Shown in pieces: positions 5,383 through 56,496 of a DNA stretch of 64,000 nucleotides. The notes under the pieces are model-generated. The model saw nothing but the letters and a program-made list of their open reading frames with translations. It was not told the origin of the DNA and did not search any database. The stretch lies in NCBI GenBank assembly GCA_002104945.1, contig MCFH01000019.1, positions 310,001-374,000 of the forward strand. Direction: 5' to 3'. Origin of the DNA: Piromyces finnis finn (lineage: Eukaryota; Fungi; Neocallimastigomycota). Every line of letters begins with the position of its first letter. The stretch's first letter is position 1. Made by a program: the position numbers and the translations under genes.

Positions 5383-6766
5383 TTTATTTATTTATTTATT
5401 TACTTATTTTTAGAACAAAGAATATTATATATATTATAGAATTATAATTCTAGTTGGTTATAATATCATTTAATAATAGTGATGATTAAATCATTAATAA
5501 ATTTCTAATCATATAATCACTATAATTTTTAACGATTCATTGATAATATATTAAATACTTTTATAGCATTAAATATACAATATATTTTTATTATTATTAA
5601 GCTTTATTATCAATCAATTGTTGTAATGGATATAAAATATTCTTCTTCCCTTTTTTTTTTTTTATGTTCTAACAACTTTTATTAATAAAAATAAATTTAT
5701 ATTTTATTTTCATCCTAATTGGATGGATTTTATTGGTTAATACAAAATTTAGTATTTCCTCTCTAATTATAATAAAAAGATATGTGTAAAAAGTTTTTCA
5801 AGTTACATAAATAGGATTACAAGTACTTTTATAAAAAGTGAAAAGAATTAAAAAAAAAAATAAAAAGTCTAGAACTAATAAAACTTTTATTATTTGATGG
5901 AATATAAAAAAATTATATTTCGCATTCCCAACTCTCTTGATGAATTAGCCCAGAGCTTATAGATACAAATTGAATGAAAAAATGGAATAACAATTTCGAT
6001 TGTTGACTTTTATAAAAATTTATTCAAACATACCTATCTATTCATGATCTACTAAAAAAAGTTAAAAAGGAAAAGATGTCATCGTAAAATTATACTAATT
6101 TTCAAAACTCTAAATAAAGTATTACAACTTATTAATGTTATATTTATCGTTATTCATTATTACTATTTGAACATTGATAGTTTCTTTAAAATAAATAAAA
6201 AAAAAAAGTCTTTTTTCAATTTTACTTTTATTTTTTACTTTTTTTTTTTTTTTTAATTGTAATGTTGATTAGTTTGAAAATAATAGTTAAAATATTTAAT
6301 AATTACTTGTGATTACGGTAGGTAATATCGTTTCTAAAAACTTTAAAAATAATAATAAAATATATTAAAAATATAAATAAAATAAAAAATATTTTAAATC
6401 TTTACTTTTGGCCTTTGAACAATATATATATATATATATATTTTATGTTAAAAAACATAACTTGAATAGTGGAAATCATAGAATAAATATATTCTTTTTT
6501 TTTTTTTTTTTTTTTCTTGTTTTTAAAATAGTTGTTTTTAAAATTATTAAAAAAAAAATGAAATATAGATTTTTTATTGAGTAAGAAATATATGAAATAT
6601 ATTTATAAAATATAAAATAAAAAATCTATATCAATAATTTGAAATTTATTGGGTATGATAAAAATATAGATTATAATGATATAAAGATCAAATCCGTTTG
6701 GCCAAAAAAAAAATTTGAAAAAGCAATGGCTATTGTATCGTGAATATGGAAAAAAAAAAAAGGCTT

Positions 6767-32305: not shown

Positions 32306-32837
32306 GTCGTTCCAGTTTTTATCCTGGTTGTTAAGGCGTTTCCTTAGCATACATAAGGCTTCTGGTTCGACCCCGCAGATGTCAGTGCCTGTGGATTTTC
32401 CCACTGGGTTTGCCATGGGTTGGGTTATGATATTCAGGTAAGTATAAATGAACTTTCTAATTTACTACTATGATAATAACACTCGTCTAGCCGGCCTGAG
32501 AGGGTCTAGTATACATGGTACATTCCAAATTAGAACTTAATAAGTGGTGACTTAGGCTATGCCAAAAACACATAATATTCCTTAATCAATTTAAGTGTAA
32601 ACATTAGGGGGCGGTTGACACGTGATCAAATTGACTATAAGAGGCTTAGCATTGTAGTTGTGAAATATCGTACAACGACATGCATCTAATGTACATGGAT
32701 TAAGTGAGCGTCGAAGCTGAAGAAACAGTATGACAGACCAGGAGGGTCACAACCACCTAGCAATAGGAATGAGCCAACGTTTCTCTAAGAACCACCATTG
32801 GAGCTAACTCTGATCGATGGGAGAAATGCACTCGGAA

Positions 32838-41851: not shown

Positions 41852-42579
41852 GTAAAAGGGAATTATGAAAAGAAAGAAAGAAAGAAAGAAAAAAAAAGCC
41901 ATCTATGTTTTTTTTTTAATAGAAATTTTTAATAGATGTAAAATAAAATAACATCTTATAAATAATATTATATATATATATATTTTTTTTTAATAATAAT
42001 TTTATTTAAAAATATACCAAAAAAAAAAAAAAAAAAAAAATAAAAGTCTTGCAAAAAAAAAAAAAAAAAAAAGAATCTTTTAAACTTTATTTTTTCTCCT
42101 TTATATATTATTTTTGTTCCATTATTATTTATGTAGTTTTTTTTTTTAACTTTTTATCAAAATATATAAATTTGTTATCAGCATTTATACAATTAATAGT
42201 AGTCTAATCTACAAGAAGTATTATAACTAAATAATGTATTATTTATATACAATTTTAATTTTATTATTATTATTAGTATATATTAGTATAAATGGAAATA
42301 GTTATCAGAGGATAAACAATTCAATATTGGTATTTAGAGAGTGTGTCAATCCACCAATTTTTTTTTTTTTTTTTTTTTAATACATCTACCACTTAACTAT
42401 TTTTTAATTATATATAATTTTAACTTAATTTTTTTTTCTAAAATTTTATTTTAAAAAATTTACTACAGCTACAAATAATTTTATTTAAAAAGTTTCTGTA
42501 AAAAAAAAAAAAAAAGGATTTAATAATAATACTTATATACAAGATTTATACTTTTATAAATACGAAATAATAAAAAAAA

Positions 42580-44210
<1,631 letters not shown>

Positions 44211-48870: not shown

Positions 48871-50057
<1,187 letters not shown>

Positions 50058-50687
50058 ATTTGATTAACAATAAGAATAATGAACAAACTAAATTGAAAAA
50101 AAACCTTGATCAAGAGAAAAAAAGAAGTGATAGAATTATCAATGCAATATTTTTTTGATGATAATTACATTGATAATTTAATAATAAAATAAAAACTAAA
50201 CAAAAAAGTAAAATAAGTAAAGAAAGAAAAAAAAAATTTATTATAAATTTATAAGAAATAACTTTTATAAATTTATATTTAAAAAAAAATGCAATTATAG
50301 AAAATTAAAAAAGTAAAAAAAAATAAATAAAAATAAAATAGAAAAAAAAATTAATCTAGTGTATTTTCGTGGATTATTAATTTTGTTATTTTATATATTT
50401 ATATATCATTAATTAAAATTTAGCTGTTCCTTTTTTTTTAAAAAGTGAGATAATTACTAATAATAGTAATTATCTATATGTTTGGAATATTTAATTGAAA
50501 TTAATATTGCCATAGCAATGCATATATCGATATCAGTATCAATATCGAAAAATTCGTGCCATTCCTCTCCATGATCAAGGATCTTTCGAAAATAGTTTTG
50601 TAATTTTTTTTTTTTTTTTTTTTTTTAAAAAAATAATTTTTTATTTTATAGGAATGAAATCAAATCGAATATGGAATGGAAAGAGAA

Positions 50688-50843
50688 AAAATTTACTACA
50701 GCTACAAATAATTTTATTTAAAAAGTTTCTGTAAAAAAAAAAAAAGGATTTAATAATAATACTTATATACAAGATTTATACTTTTATAAATACGAAATAA
50801 TAAAAAAAAATGTTTTTATTAACAGGAACTTCGTCTATTCAAA
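50688..50843 (+). other. Captured copy of the SIW14 5' region (about 42455-42613)
   Basis: Near-identical to 42455-42613 apart from A-run length. Confidence 0.95.
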
Positions 50844-51259
50844 ACACCATTCTTGACGGTAACCGCGGAACTTCTAACCAAAATCATGCCTTTTGCTATT
50901 GGCCAGCAATGGTCAATGTTCAAAAGGTTTGAAGCAACATCCAAGAGCGTCAATGCTGAAGAAACAGTAAGACAGGCCAGGAGGGCCAGCGCAACCAATG
51001 GAGATCATAATTTTGTTCCATGACAAAATTTTGATCTTTGGCTCGGTGTCCCATTGGAAGTCAAATACAATTATTATACTTTAGTATGATAGTGGCTTTC
51101 TTACTTTAATTAAAATTACTAGAATACATTATACCCAATTTTTATTCATTTGTGTTTATTTAAACATATTTTTTTTTATTTTTATTTTATTTTAATTTTT
51201 ATATTACATGTATTATAATTTTAATTAAATTAATAATAAAGTTTAAAATATTTGATGCC

Positions 51260-51305
<46 letters not shown>
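50844..51305 (+). mobile_element. 5'-truncated copy of the same LINE (3' ~415 nt plus poly(A)) nested in the captured exon
   Basis: Matches 55805-56216 with one substitution in the coding part and a T-run difference. About 33-35 nt of the SIW14 copy (42614-42648) is missing at the site; no TSD. Confidence 0.95.
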
Positions 51306-51307
<2 letters not shown>

Positions 51308-51427
51308 AATAGAAGAGTTAATTCCAATGGAGAATTTTAGTATGATTTGTAAAGGTGTGTATAGAGGAGCATTTCCAAAAAAGAAAAACTTTCCTTTTTT
51401 AAAAAAACTTGGTTTAAGAAGTATATT
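51306..51427 (+). other. Captured copy of the rest of SIW14 exon 1 (42649-42770)
   Basis: 122 nt with 2 substitutions; ends at AGTATATT, exactly where the GTAAGT intron starts in the host gene. Confidence 0.95.
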
Positions 51428-51470
51428 TATTTATTTTATATTCAATATTTTTTAATTAGAATTAATTATC

Positions 51471-54400
51471 ATGTCAGTCCTTTATATTAAAGATAAGAAT
51501 TATATCAGACGTGGTACCCGGTCTTATGGTATCCCCTTAGATGATATTCGCTCCTTCTTTATCCGTGGTATTCGATCATGGTCAGTAAATATGCTATGGG
51601 AAAAACTCGAGGTTATTCTAGAAGATAAATTTAATTCAGTTATTAGTGTTAAATATTTTCAGACTTTCAATGATCACTTTTTCTTAGTCAAGGTTCATGG
51701 TTCATCGAAAGATTGTGTTAAAATCTTACACATGTTAAAGAAGAAACTTTCAGTTACCTCAATTTCCTTTTCAGCTCGTAGTAGAAGGAATCACAAATAC
51801 ACTTTTTCCACACTCAAACGTAAAATTTTAGTTTCTAATAAACATCAACTTTCAATTCAACAATCAGTTCAACAATCAGTTCAACAATCTCATCAACAAT
51901 CCGATCTTCAACAAGATCTTCAACAAGATCTTCAACAAGTTTCCCATCATGAAAATATTCCAGATCTACAGCAAACACAATTTCAATCTCAACATTCAAC
52001 AATTAATTCTAATAGCTCTATCAACTCTGCTAACAGTTCAATAGTTGATAGTTCTTCAGTTTCACAGCCATCTAGTAATAGTTCTACTTATTCCTCTGAT
52101 GCATCATCCATTAATAACGATGACTTTAATAATAATAATAATAGCAACGATTCTTCCTCATCCAACAAGCCTGATAACTTTTCTTTTTGTCTTAGTTGGA
52201 ACACCAATGGGTGGAATCACGAAAAGAGAGATAGTATTAGCTATTTCACAGCTATTTTCAAACCATTATTCTTATGTTTCCAAGAAACTGGTAATGGTTC
52301 TGGTTCGAATACAGATTATCCTTGTCGTGTTACTTTGCGAAACTATAGACACTTTTTCAAGAAAGCTGACGAATCAGTTCCGGGAATGAGAGGTTTATAT
52401 TTAGGTTTTCACAATTCGTGTCAAGCCTCACTTGAAAACTTCTCTGGAAAGTATATTATTTCTATTTATACTTTTAGTCTTTGGAATAGATTCAAATGCT
52501 CGATTGGAAATGTTTATATGTCTCATAGTCATCACAACATCTATGTTGATCATGCAAAGTTAGAAGTTCGCTTGTGGTTACAAACTCATTCATCCCATCC
52601 ATCGATTCTTGTTGATGATTTTAATATGTCTAAAGTAAAATTATCCAACTGGTTATCAACTAATGGATTAGGAGATTGGGAAATTCTTCCGCTTAGAGAG
52701 TCGACTATCTCTTGGACTCGAGGTGATCAATCTTCCGACATTGACCATGCTCTTATCAATTCGAAGATGAAAGATCTTATTCACTCAGGATCATTTATAA
52801 ATAATTTTTATCCTGTATCAGACCATAAGCCACTTCTTATTAATGGTAAAATTATTCCTATGGAAGATTTTTCTAATGACTTTAATGTTCCTAAGAAAAT
52901 TCTGAAATGGAATAGATTAAAATGTATTGAGGAAAAGGAATCTATTCTCAGTCATAATAAATTCCAAATACTTTCAGCAAAATTCAACGATCCTAATGTT
53001 TCTACAGATGAACTTTCCAAAGAGTTTACTTCAACTGCTTTTTCAATTGCAGACGAGCTCAGTATTACCTCAGCAAATAATGTTATAAAGTCTTCATTTC
53101 ATATTTCACAACAAATTTTTAATCTTCAAAAAATCAAAATGAAGTTGTATAAGAGATTTAAAAAAGAAAGAATTTATGATATAGATGAATTTATTAAAAG
53201 AATTAAAATCTACCGTAAGCTCATTGATTACATCCACAAAAGATGTAATGAATTTAGGAAACAAGAATATCTTCATTGGATTAAAACAGGATGTGAGTAT
53301 ATGAAGAGTCATAATCCTAAGAAGGCCTGGAAATGGATCAAGAAAACTGCAAAAATAGGAAAAGATTCTTTCTTTATTGCTCAACCAATTAAAAATAAAA
53401 ATGGAGAATTAGTTGTTGCTACAGAAGAACAACTAGAAGTGTGGCATGATCATTTCGAAAAGCTTGCATCAGATCCAAGTGGTGTAAGTCTTGATTTGGA
53501 GCATTGGTATGAAGAACCAATGAATAAACGTTTTTCACTTCCTATGCTTGATGAGTGGGATATCAACCAAGATATTAGTATTGATGAAGTCAAGTCAGCT
53601 ATCCTCTCTACTCCAAATTATAAAGCATCAGGTCCGGATGGTATTCCAATTGAATTTTACAAAGCATTAATTCCATCAAGTAATGATTCTAATAATGCTA
53701 CAGATAATAATTCTTCCGGTAATACCACTTCAGATAATGATGCTCATGGTTTAAATTTTATTCTTAAATTATTCAACCGTATTTGGGATGGAGACTTCCC
53801 CAACTCATGGAATGAATCCAGTATTGTTTCTATTCCTAAGAAGGGAGATTTGACAGATTGTGATAACTATCGAGGTATATCACTTATCAATAATGGCATT
53901 AAGTTGATTTCCAAAATTGTCACCACTAGAATCTCAGAAAATGGTCTAAAGAATAATTTCATTAGACCTGAACAATTTGGTTTTCGAAAAAAGGAAGAAA
54001 GTATCAGTCTTTTCATTTCAATCCAAGAAATATGCCGTAGACGTCAATTAGATAATAAAGAGACATATTTGGCCTTTTTAGATCTCAGGAAAGCATACGA
54101 TTCAGTCCCAATCGGTAATATTCTCCATAAATTAGATTGTTTAGGAATCCGAGGTAAGAGTTTACAATTTATCAAAAATTTATATTTAACATCTAAGGCT
54201 AATGTCAAATTAGATGGACAATTCTCGAAATCTTTTGATGTGAAGAAAGGAGTCCGTCAAGGATGCCCTCTTTCTCCTATTCTCTTTAATCTCTTTATTA
54301 ATGATATATTTAAAGAGTGCGAAGATCTAGGAGTCAGTTTAGGTGACACTCGATGCTGTGGTGGACTTTTTGCAGATGATATAGTTATTTGTGCTCCAAC

Positions 54401-55985
54401 AAGAGGATGCTTAAAAAAGATGCTAAGAAGAGTTAATGAATGGGCCTTGTATAATGAAATGGAATTTGGTATCCAGAAGTGTTCAACGATGGTGATTCGT
54501 CCTGAATCAATAGAAAATCAGAACAAGAGAGATCCAACATTTTACTTAGCAGGACAACCCATTCCAACTACTGATTGCTATACTTATCTTGGTGTTCCAT
54601 TTGATAAGAATCTGTCCCTTAAACCAGTAATTAAAGCTCTTAATAACAAGGTTTTGAAAGGACTTTTTTCAGTCAGTAAATTCTTAAGAAATCCTAATAT
54701 TCCTATTCCCTTCAAAAAGCTAGTACTTAACTCACAAGTGATTAGCAGAGTTTCATACTTTGCACCATTACTTGGATCCAACAAAGCCAGGTCTAGGATT
54801 GCTCAGAAGCATGTTAACAAAGGAATACGATGGGTTGCCGGAGTTCATAAAGCTGTATCGTTTATATCTTTATACTCTATCTCAAAAGATTTGAATATTC
54901 CTCCATTGTCAGCCAAATGTGCGTTAGCTCAGGTTAGATGTTTTAACAAATGGAAAAACTCAAATTGTATTATCTCATACCTTGTCAATTACATTCCTAA
55001 ATTTAGAAAATACACGTGGTGCAAATCAAGTAGGACACTTGATAAAAAATTAAAGAAACATGGAGATGTTAAAGCAGTTAAAAACTTTTATTGGAAAGAT
55101 CTCAAAGGAAATTCAATCAAAGCGCAATATTATGATGATAATAAATTTATTGAAACTAAAGATTTTATCAAATTATGTTATGAGTACCCAGAGTTTGCCT
55201 ATGGCTTCTACTGGCTCTTGAAAGCAAGAAGCGGATACAAGTTGGATGCTAGAGTTGCCAAAGCTGCTAAATTTGTTGATCCAGTTTGTCCTAACTACTG
55301 TCCATGTTGCAAGTGTGGAGATCAAAGTATTAAACATTGGTTATTAGATTGTCCAACATTTAGAGATATCCGTATTAAACATTATGAATCCATAGTCCAG
55401 CTACTAAATTTTTTCAGTCAACGTAATTCCAATAGTCCTATCAATAATAATGAAAATGTTAATATCAGTAGAGATAGCAATAACATTAATAGTAATAGTA
55501 ACAATAGTAGTAATAACAATAGTAGTAATAGAAATAGTAATAATAACAATAGTAGTAATAGAAATAATAATATTAGTAATGATAACAATAGTGAAGATAA
55601 TAATTCTAATTTAGATAGTAATTTAGTTAATGATAGTAATAGTTCTAATAATCCGGTGAATATTAATGTGTATGATTATTCTAGTGTGTGCAGTAAAATA
55701 TTTAAATTCCTTCTTGGGGGAAGAAGTTTTAACAATATTAATTACAATTCAAGGGAATGGAAAGAACTTTGTAAGCGTCAGATTCAATCTGGTACTAATG
55801 AAGGAACACCATTCTTGACGGTAACCGCGGAACTTCTAACCAAAATCATGCCTTTTGCTATTGGCCAGCAATGGACAATGTTCAAAAGGTTTGAAGCAAC
55901 ATCCAAGAGCGTCAATGCTGAAGAAACAGTAAGACAGGCCAGGAGGGCCAGCGCAACCAATGGAGATCATAATTTTGTTCCATGA
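51471..55985 (+). mobile_element. Non-LTR retrotransposon (LINE), single 1504-aa ORF: putative RRM-like N-terminus, APE endonuclease, reverse transcriptase and CCHC knuckle; 3' UTR and poly(A) extend to 56253
   Basis: APE motifs SWNTNG, FQET, DDFN, IDH and SDHKP. RT motifs GPDGIP, NYRGISL, QFGFR, DLRKAYDSV, GVRQGCPLSP, FADD and YTYLG. CPCC..H..C near the C-terminus. Clade not determined (RTE-like single-ORF layout). Confidence 0.95.
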
Positions 55986-56213
55986 CAAAATTTTGATCTT
56001 TGGCTCGGTGTCCCATTGGAAGTCAAATACAATTATTATACTTTAGTATGATAGTGGCTTTCTTACTTTAATTAAAATTACTAGAATACATTATACCCAA
56101 TTTTTATTCATTTGTGTTTATTTAAACATATTTTTTTTTTTATATTTAATTTTTTTATTACATGTATTATAATTTTAATTAAATTAATAATAAAGTTTAA
56201 AATATTTGATGCC

Positions 56214-56256
<43 letters not shown>

Positions 56257-56496
56257 AATCGAATATGGAATGGAAAGAGAAGAAAGGTTGTCTTTTCGAA
56301 GCATTTCCTGTAGTATTCAATAGATTGATTTATAATTAATTATTTATAGTTAAAAAAAAAATTATATATTTTCTATTCATTTTTTTTAACGACAAGAATT
56401 TTTTGATATTGATATATACATTGATATATTTTTATTCAACATTTTCATAATTTGAATATTTAATCATTAATATTATAAAAAATATAGTATATTAAA

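Follow-up and report, generated by a model that had tools for sequence, protein, structure and literature searches.

A 64,000-nucleotide window of the Piromyces finnis genome (GenBank assembly GCA_002104945.1, contig MCFH01000019.1, here C101, positions 310001-374000) contains a full-length long interspersed nuclear element (LINE) whose 5′ end is the first exon of a neighboring gene that encodes a Siw14-like phosphatase. The chimera is very probably a retrotransposed hybrid RNA, in which host exon 1 had been spliced to the acceptor of an intron in the LINE 5′ untranslated region (5′UTR). Both boundaries of the fusion lie exactly on splice sites, the acceptor belongs to a real LINE intron, the unit carries the hallmarks of retrotransposition, and the event is unique in the genome. 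The genome searched is very AT-rich and comprises 56.5 Mb in 232 contigs; the sequence also occurs in gut-metagenome runs. Coordinates refer to the window unless a contig is named.

The retrotransposed unit is enclosed by a perfect target-site duplication (TSD) of 31 bp, with identical copies at 50657-50687 and 56251-56281. All parts between these repeats lie on the + strand. The captured host 5′ region and the first part of exon 1 come first (50688-50846, a copy of about 42455-42613, with the host ATG at 50810), followed by the 3′ end of a nested, 5′-truncated LINE with its own 43-A tail (50847-51306), which replaces about 42614-42647 of the host sequence. The second part of exon 1 (51307-51427, a copy of about 42650-42770) stops at the last base of the exon. 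It is joined to a 43-nt LINE leader (51428-51470), the stretch that in native copies runs from the 3′ splice site, AG|TATTTATTTT, to the start of the LINE open reading frame (ORF). The ORF (51471-55985) is uninterrupted, encodes 1504 residues in translation and matches the RVT_1 profile; the LINE 3′UTR and a poly(A) tail of about 37 A, running into the TSD, complete the unit (55986-56250). Host and LINE sequences are therefore in the same sense orientation, and the TSD encloses the whole chimera together with its poly(A). A first-pass annotation of the window, made from the sequence alone, had reported a 31-bp TSD around exon 1, 43 nt of leader, the ORF and poly(A). The duplication is confirmed and all of these parts are present, but the annotation overlooked that exon 1 is interrupted by the LINE fragment at 50847-51306.

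The donor gene is intact and neighbors the chimera. Its source segment (42453-42770, + strand) comprises about 127 nt before the ATG at 42580 and exon 1, and ends at the splice donor ...AGTATATT|GTAAGT at 42770|42771. The 375-nt intron 1 that follows (42771-43145, + strand, GTAAGT...TCGTAG) is missing from the chimera. Pfam searches matched exon 1 (42580-42770) to positions 1-36 of the Y_phosphatase2 profile (PF03162, Siw14/Oca family, E 5.6e-11), exon 2 (43146-43239) to positions 39-68, and the last exon to positions 103-156. The profile match of exon 1 is continued by that of exon 2, which establishes 42770|42771 as a genuine boundary between exon and intron. The copy in the chimera stops at 42770, and GTAAGT is what follows in the gene, in agreement with the earlier claim that the captured piece ends at the last base of exon 1. 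At its other end, the captured piece starts 125-127 nt upstream of the phosphatase ATG, a position that may mark the transcription start of the gene.

Overall identity between the host part of the chimera and the source gene is about 99%. When 50686-50846 is aligned to 42453-42616, the sole difference is an A-run that is 3 A shorter in the chimera. Alignment of 51305-51427 to 42648-42770 shows two substitutions, at 51346 (A in the chimera, G in the host) and 51395 (T in the chimera, C in the host). Host exon 1 was found twice genome-wide, in the phosphatase gene and in the chimera. A likeness between exon 2 and the LINE leader was also considered, prompted by loose ends at 51439 in the public runs X2 and X9; exon 2 starts with AACACTTATT and has no such likeness.

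The LINE side of the fusion was analyzed in native copies of the element. In all 28 native upstream regions that were fetched, ...TTATTAG stands right before TATTTATTTTATATTC. A genome-wide pattern search then recovered 286 native copies that match AG plus leader exactly, every one of them with TTAG. The first-pass annotation had named a fixed AG acceptor in native copies as a test of its proposal, and TTAG before TATTTATTTTATATTC in all 286 matched copies is such an acceptor. In the same genome-wide search, the patterns VAG, VTAG and BG before the leader gave no match, and BTTAG gave a single native variant with a single-nucleotide polymorphism (SNP). Once chance matches were removed, only three copies were without AG before the leader: the chimera and the copies at C165:298823 and C192:234162. 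These counts cover 289 of the 317 copies with an ORF start. The remaining 28, among them C101:188354, C1:278539, C1:2591342, C112:1330165, C112:1537182, C113:117102, C69:5381 and C130:8539, do not carry the exact 27-nt word of AG plus leader and fall outside the junction count; their number is about that expected from 0.5-1% divergence.

The copies at C165:298823 and C192:234162 have different upstream flanks. Both lack exactly 77 nt, GTACTATCC...TTATTAG, from GT to AG, so that AACAATTTTT is joined to TATTTATTTT. The LINE part of the chimera starts at this same base. Because exactly 77 nt bounded by GT and AG are missing in two other copies, the LINE 5′UTR holds a real spliceosomal GT-AG intron of this length. 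Judging from these copies, spliced LINE RNAs are retrotransposed on occasion; the intron is almost always retained in the transposing RNA.

The intron lies at the end of a long and repetitive 5′ region. Native full-length copies reach ~750-1100 nt upstream of the 43-nt leader. Their 5′UTR is built from 1-4 tandem monomers of ~116 nt starting with CCCTCTTGGGAACGTGCC, followed by CAG|GTAAGT, a TACTAAC box and a variable A-run, and it closes with ...AACAATTTTT, then GTACTATCC...TTTTTATTAG, then the leader. The TACTAAC box is located ~170 nt before the acceptor (loci L002-L030 and L032-L033; for example L024, positions -1110 to 0). Genome-wide patterns revealed no copy spliced from the strong donor CAG|GTAAGT to the leader acceptor, and no copy spliced from this donor to the AG after the TACTAAC box.

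In the proposed mechanism, the spliceosome would have joined the 5′ splice site of phosphatase exon 1 to the 3′ splice site of the 77-nt LINE intron. The promoter-bearing LINE 5′UTR (~750-1100 nt of tandem monomers plus leader) would thereby have been swapped for the host 5′UTR and exon 1. The LINE-encoded protein would then have copied the hybrid RNA by target-primed reverse transcription at an A/T-rich site, a process that would account for the poly(A) tail and the 31-bp TSD. The main junction at 51427|51428 has zero shared bases: the host gene reads on with G, and native LINE copies carry AG upstream. Microhomology, which the first-pass annotation had put forward as one of the findings that would undo its interpretation, is ruled out at this junction, since host and native LINE have no base in common there. 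Because the host part stops exactly at the donor and the join has no shared bases, a coincidence of breakpoints is implausible; chance would have had to pick out a single position in the ~5.6-kb element together with a single position in the gene. The exact donor end and the exact intron-acceptor start bear out the claim of an RNA-level, splice-site-guided event. Of the two routes that had been offered for it, the splicing of exon 1 to an acceptor in the LINE 5′ region, followed by retrotransposition, is strongly supported, the AG in question being the acceptor of an intron absent from two copies.

The other route had the reverse transcriptase reach the end of the LINE template and jump onto the free 5′-exon splicing intermediate of a nascent phosphatase transcript. 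Template switching does happen in this family (at loci L002 and L075, described below), and the host part does end at a donor, as such a jump would have it. The LINE part, on the other hand, does not reach back to an RNA 5′ end; it breaks off exactly at the acceptor used by both intron-less copies, ~750-1100 nt from the start of the native element. The lariat-3′exon intermediate would have brought intron sequence up to the branch point, of which none is present, and two independent exact splice-site coincidences are unexpected from template switching. This route is accordingly very improbable. An equally poor prospect is an assembly artifact or a DNA-level rearrangement, whether a mis-join in repeat-rich sequence or a duplicated gene 5′ end fused to a LINE. 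More than 300 near-identical LINE copies are a classic source of mis-joins, and read evidence is available at the contig level only, from Logan assembled contigs of public runs, which drop rare forms. Against it stand the perfect TSD around the whole unit, the position of both breakpoints on splice sites, the captured exon's own differences from its source, and the poly(A)|TSD boundary, which a mis-join would not make. A 152-nt contig of run X1 also covers 51319-51455 and crosses the exon 1|leader junction by 28 nt (the criterion being 31 nt); run X1 is from organism A, probably the assembled strain, and hence not independent. This contig reads C, the host base, at 51395 where the assembly has T. 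The assembly base is thus uncertain, as that at 51346 possibly is too, and the chimera may be closer to its source than the assembly shows. A contig joint that skips 5598 nt with a 21-nt side was disregarded because it falls in AT-rich sequence and not at the TSD. Among the listed contigs of the putative RNA runs X2 and X7, none bridges 51427|51428, with the same caveat that such contigs drop rare forms. Metagenome scans returned no match to the TSD word; for the non-native leader word they returned two, both non-LINE sequences matched by chance. Several points do weigh against a spliced and retrotransposed hybrid. The chimera is a single case among 289 copies, with 28 of 317 outside the count; the interruption of the captured exon requires at least one further step; and trans-splicing followed by random insertion does not predict that the insertion should lie 7.9 kb from the donor gene on the same strand. 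In addition, read support is weak, the junctions being seen in one assembly and one short contig, and the listed contigs of the putative RNA runs gave no evidence for the junction or for use of the acceptor.

Whether the two RNAs were joined in trans or in cis bears directly on this proximity. Donor gene and chimera share a strand, with the chimera 7.9 kb farther downstream, an arrangement with P of about 2.8e-4 under uniform insertion. Splicing in trans is slightly favored, because no LINE other than the chimera is found in or downstream of the phosphatase gene. BLAST of the native element against the window returned only the chimera, its nested fragment and a 53-nt match at 32706-32755; there is no native LINE 5′UTR or second LINE body in the window, and no LINE in the introns of the gene or in the 6.4 kb from its stop codon to the chimera. 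The cis variant, a somewhat less probable but still serious contender, assumes a former native LINE downstream of the gene, oriented like it and, in the simplest case, occupying the present insertion site. Transcription reading through from the gene's promoter would then have yielded an RNA in which the donor of exon 1 was spliced to the acceptor of that LINE. This hybrid would have integrated again at or beside the LINE it came from, and recombination would have collapsed the resulting tandem, with the chimera as the only remnant. Such a local process would account for the position and strand of the insertion. The family is also often found as same-orientation neighbors one element length apart (C1:1522348/1527860/1533481, C57:127526/133240, C112:799789/805467 and C124:138287/143950) and forms head-to-tail arrays, and a human case of cis-splicing from an intronic L1 is on record (bioRxiv 10.1101/2025.02.02.635956). 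The absence of a native 5′UTR or second LINE body from the window argues against this variant, as LINEs do not excise. Moreover, the TSD directly abuts captured host sequence, so the present copy is the complete insertion itself. The read-through would have had to cross the rest of the gene and the same-strand spermidine synthase gene (49398-50057) in the 6.4-kb interval, skipping all exons, and several additional steps are needed. A local form of trans-splicing is rather unlikely: a nuclear LINE RNA with retained intron, close to the integration site, would have been spliced co-transcriptionally to the donor of nascent exon 1 8 kb away, with the nested fragment as a second template in the same event. 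If this were true, the short distance between donor and insertion would mark the position of the LINE particle at the time of splicing, and the spliceosome would have access to LINE integration complexes. More generally, the 8-kb proximity, if not due to chance, has a bearing on the cellular site at which hybrids of this type arise.

The nested fragment (50847-51306, about 460 bp) is made up of ~420 nt from the LINE 3′ end and a tail of 43 A, and takes the place of ~33 nt of exon 1. At this position the host reads ...TTCAAA|CCAATGACCCTAATAATAATAAAAACAATACAG|AAGAAATAG..., and the piece that precedes the fragment ends after the first 34 nt of coding sequence. Its junctions have 1-2 nt of A microhomology, and its tail meets exon 1 where the latter is A-rich. 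The 3′ ends of the nested and outer copies had been scored as 100% identical, which is a rounded value; they actually differ by one substitution and indels. The substitution is T at 50913 versus A at 55875, a site that is polymorphic 15:14 among 29 family copies. A further difference lies at another site that is polymorphic in the family, and a third in an AT-rich indel block, for which the nested copy shows the majority form. Because the two differ at polymorphic sites, the nested piece derives from a different LINE RNA.

Two origins of this fragment, a later 5′-truncated insertion with a ~33-bp target deletion and an out-and-back template switch, are roughly even. In the double switch, which is given a little under an even chance, the growing cDNA would have moved from an A-rich stretch to the tail of another LINE RNA, been extended there by ~420 nt and rejoined the hybrid RNA 33 nt farther upstream. 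Of 29 LINE 3′ ends sampled, more than half adjoin a further LINE piece, frequently with poly(A) leading straight into internal LINE sequence, and two full-length copies carry internal LINE pieces fused to native 5′ ends. The 1-2 nt of A microhomology at both junctions and the youth of the chimera (about 99% identical to its source) point the same way. So does the a priori probability of an independent hit in the 316-bp target, which is <1% at about 1100 3′-end copies in 56 Mb. The switch does need two different LINE RNAs and an enzyme that comes back to the same RNA, whereas LINEs ordinarily produce 5′-truncated insertions with small target deletions.

Composite LINE insertions are also seen elsewhere in the genome. 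Head-to-tail arrays of 5′-truncated copies occur at L061, L064, L066/L078/L083 (C232:14.8-17.2 kb), L079, L059 and L063. In these arrays, each fragment's poly(A) runs straight into internal LINE sequence of its neighbor without intervening target DNA, a sign either of reinsertion targeted to poly(A) or of template switching in series. At L002 (C161) and L075 (C1:1182093-1185615), both full-length native copies, a sense internal LINE fragment of ~100-190 nt is fused to the first monomer. These extra fragments sit downstream of another copy's poly(A), and the fusions look like template switches at the RNA 5′ end.

The chimera appears to have had no further career. Among the 289 examined copies, no other host exon stands at the leader acceptor. 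The patterns with non-G at -1, non-A at -2 and non-native bases at -3, -4 or -5 returned only the chimera, the two intron-less copies and one native SNP variant. No progeny of the chimera is present in the genome. The chimera lost the monomer region, the presumed site of the promoter. Prior to insertion of the nested fragment, an upstream ORF of 72 codons would have run from the host ATG to a stop in the leader. The lack of progeny fits the loss of the native promoter and the long upstream ORF, and the chimera looks like an evolutionary dead end. These results bear on two expectations of the first-pass annotation. Different host first exons, expected in other copies, were not found among the 289. 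The broader proposal, that a LINE can acquire host leaders in a splice-site-guided way, is shown once, as a likely dead end.

Events of this type are already known from L1, SVA and spliced L1 elements; what is new is the host lineage, the demonstrable LINE-intron acceptor, the location of the insertion next to its donor gene, and the LINE fragment nested in the exon. Template-switch chimeras of the U6/L1 type have their junctions at RNA ends or at arbitrary sites. The unit described here is similarly a chimeric insertion within one TSD, and template switching may explain its nested fragment; unlike those chimeras, its main junction falls on two splice sites.

The closest parallel is provided by human mRNA/LINE-1 5′ chimeras, most of whose donor genes are without an intronic LINE, and for which trans-splicing has been proposed (bioRxiv 10.1101/2025.02.02.635956). 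Those chimeras and the present one share a nearly full-length LINE preceded, in the sense direction, by the first exon or exons of a host gene; the host segment is cut off exactly at a splice donor, the LINE segment opens beside an acceptor, and a TSD and poly(A) surround the unit. The acceptor there is a cryptic site, whereas here it comes from a demonstrable intron of the LINE 5′UTR. The AT-rich fungal genome, the insertion 8 kb from the donor gene and the nested LINE fragment in the exon also set the present case apart. A similar course, with a host first exon spliced to an acceptor in the 5′ part of an element and then retrotransposed, is known for SVA_F1 (MAST2 exon 1) and chimpanzee pt_SVA_D6 (STK40 exon 1) (PMC6139936). 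Those elements are non-autonomous and mobilized by L1 in trans, whereas the LINE here is autonomous. Their GC-rich captured exons act as promoters and gave rise to subfamilies of 84-94 copies, in contrast to the chimera, which is without progeny (PMC6139936). The C165 and C192 copies, as retrotransposed spliced LINE RNAs, resemble the spliced integrated retrotransposed L1 elements (SpIREs; PMC5860796). They are rare, at 2 versus 286 unspliced copies, as expected if splicing is a dead end for the element (cf. SpIREs, PMC5860796). SpIREs use intra-element donors and acceptors only, unlike the chimera, which joins a host donor to an element acceptor (PMC5860796).

With this case, splice-mediated exon capture by retroelements, so far a matter of L1 and SVA in primates, is extended to a far removed and extremely AT-rich lineage, probably an anaerobic gut fungus. 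It is a clean natural record of a host 5′ exon that was very probably spliced to an autonomous LINE and then fixed in DNA with both boundaries exact, and its acceptor is validated by 286 unspliced and two spliced sister copies. The counts also yield a usable estimate of the leakage of splicing into retrotransposition, namely one host chimera and two intron-less copies per 289.

The LINE itself encodes a non-LTR-type reverse transcriptase, with the RVT_1 match at ORF residues 788-1043 (E 2.5e-35). The closest solved structure to this domain is human L1 ORF2p (E 4.7e-33), and R2 is weaker (4e-18). Motifs like those of apurinic/apyrimidinic endonucleases (APE), SWNTNGW, CFQET, LVDDFN, SDIDHALIN and SDHKPL, occur in APE order at about residues 238-470, as recognized by eye only; residues 1-760 have no Pfam or PDB sequence match. 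The C-terminus contains a zinc knuckle, for which the zf-RVT match is weak. The family is large and young. At least 317 copies have an ORF start and at least 1116 candidate 3′ ends are present, many of them from 5′-truncated copies, and the copies are about 97-99% identical. An exact-protein look-up of the LINE ORF in public assemblies had nothing on record. The chimera's TSD is perfect over 31 bp, and no TSD is recognizable for two full-length pairs, L024/L058 (C1:703-711 kb) and L026/L085 (C182:135-143 kb), or for the truncated copy L065. Head-to-head inverted LINE 5′ regions, 0.2-0.9 kb apart, occur near contig ends at C21:1368(-)/1573(+) and C54:590(-)/1486(+).

Other features of the window and of the family's surroundings were also noted. 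The spermidine synthase gene mentioned above is represented at 49398-50057 on the + strand by its last exon (PF01564, E 8e-75), 600 bp upstream of the insertion site. The 53-nt stretch at 32706-32755 is located within a pair of units resembling short interspersed nuclear elements (SINEs) and is 85% identical to the LINE 3′UTR (native positions 5590-5642). Outside the window, locus L073 (C167:815076-818598) contains a SINE-like unit of ~700 nt. Its first part is the final ~40 nt of the LINE head, CAG|GTAAGTTTGTATA included; an unrelated body (CTTCTTGGTGGAACTTTAGC...) and a separate poly(A) follow. This unit is flanked by a LINE tail and by a LINE 5′UTR starting with GGTAAGT. The same SINE-like body also follows LINE tails in L065 and L059.

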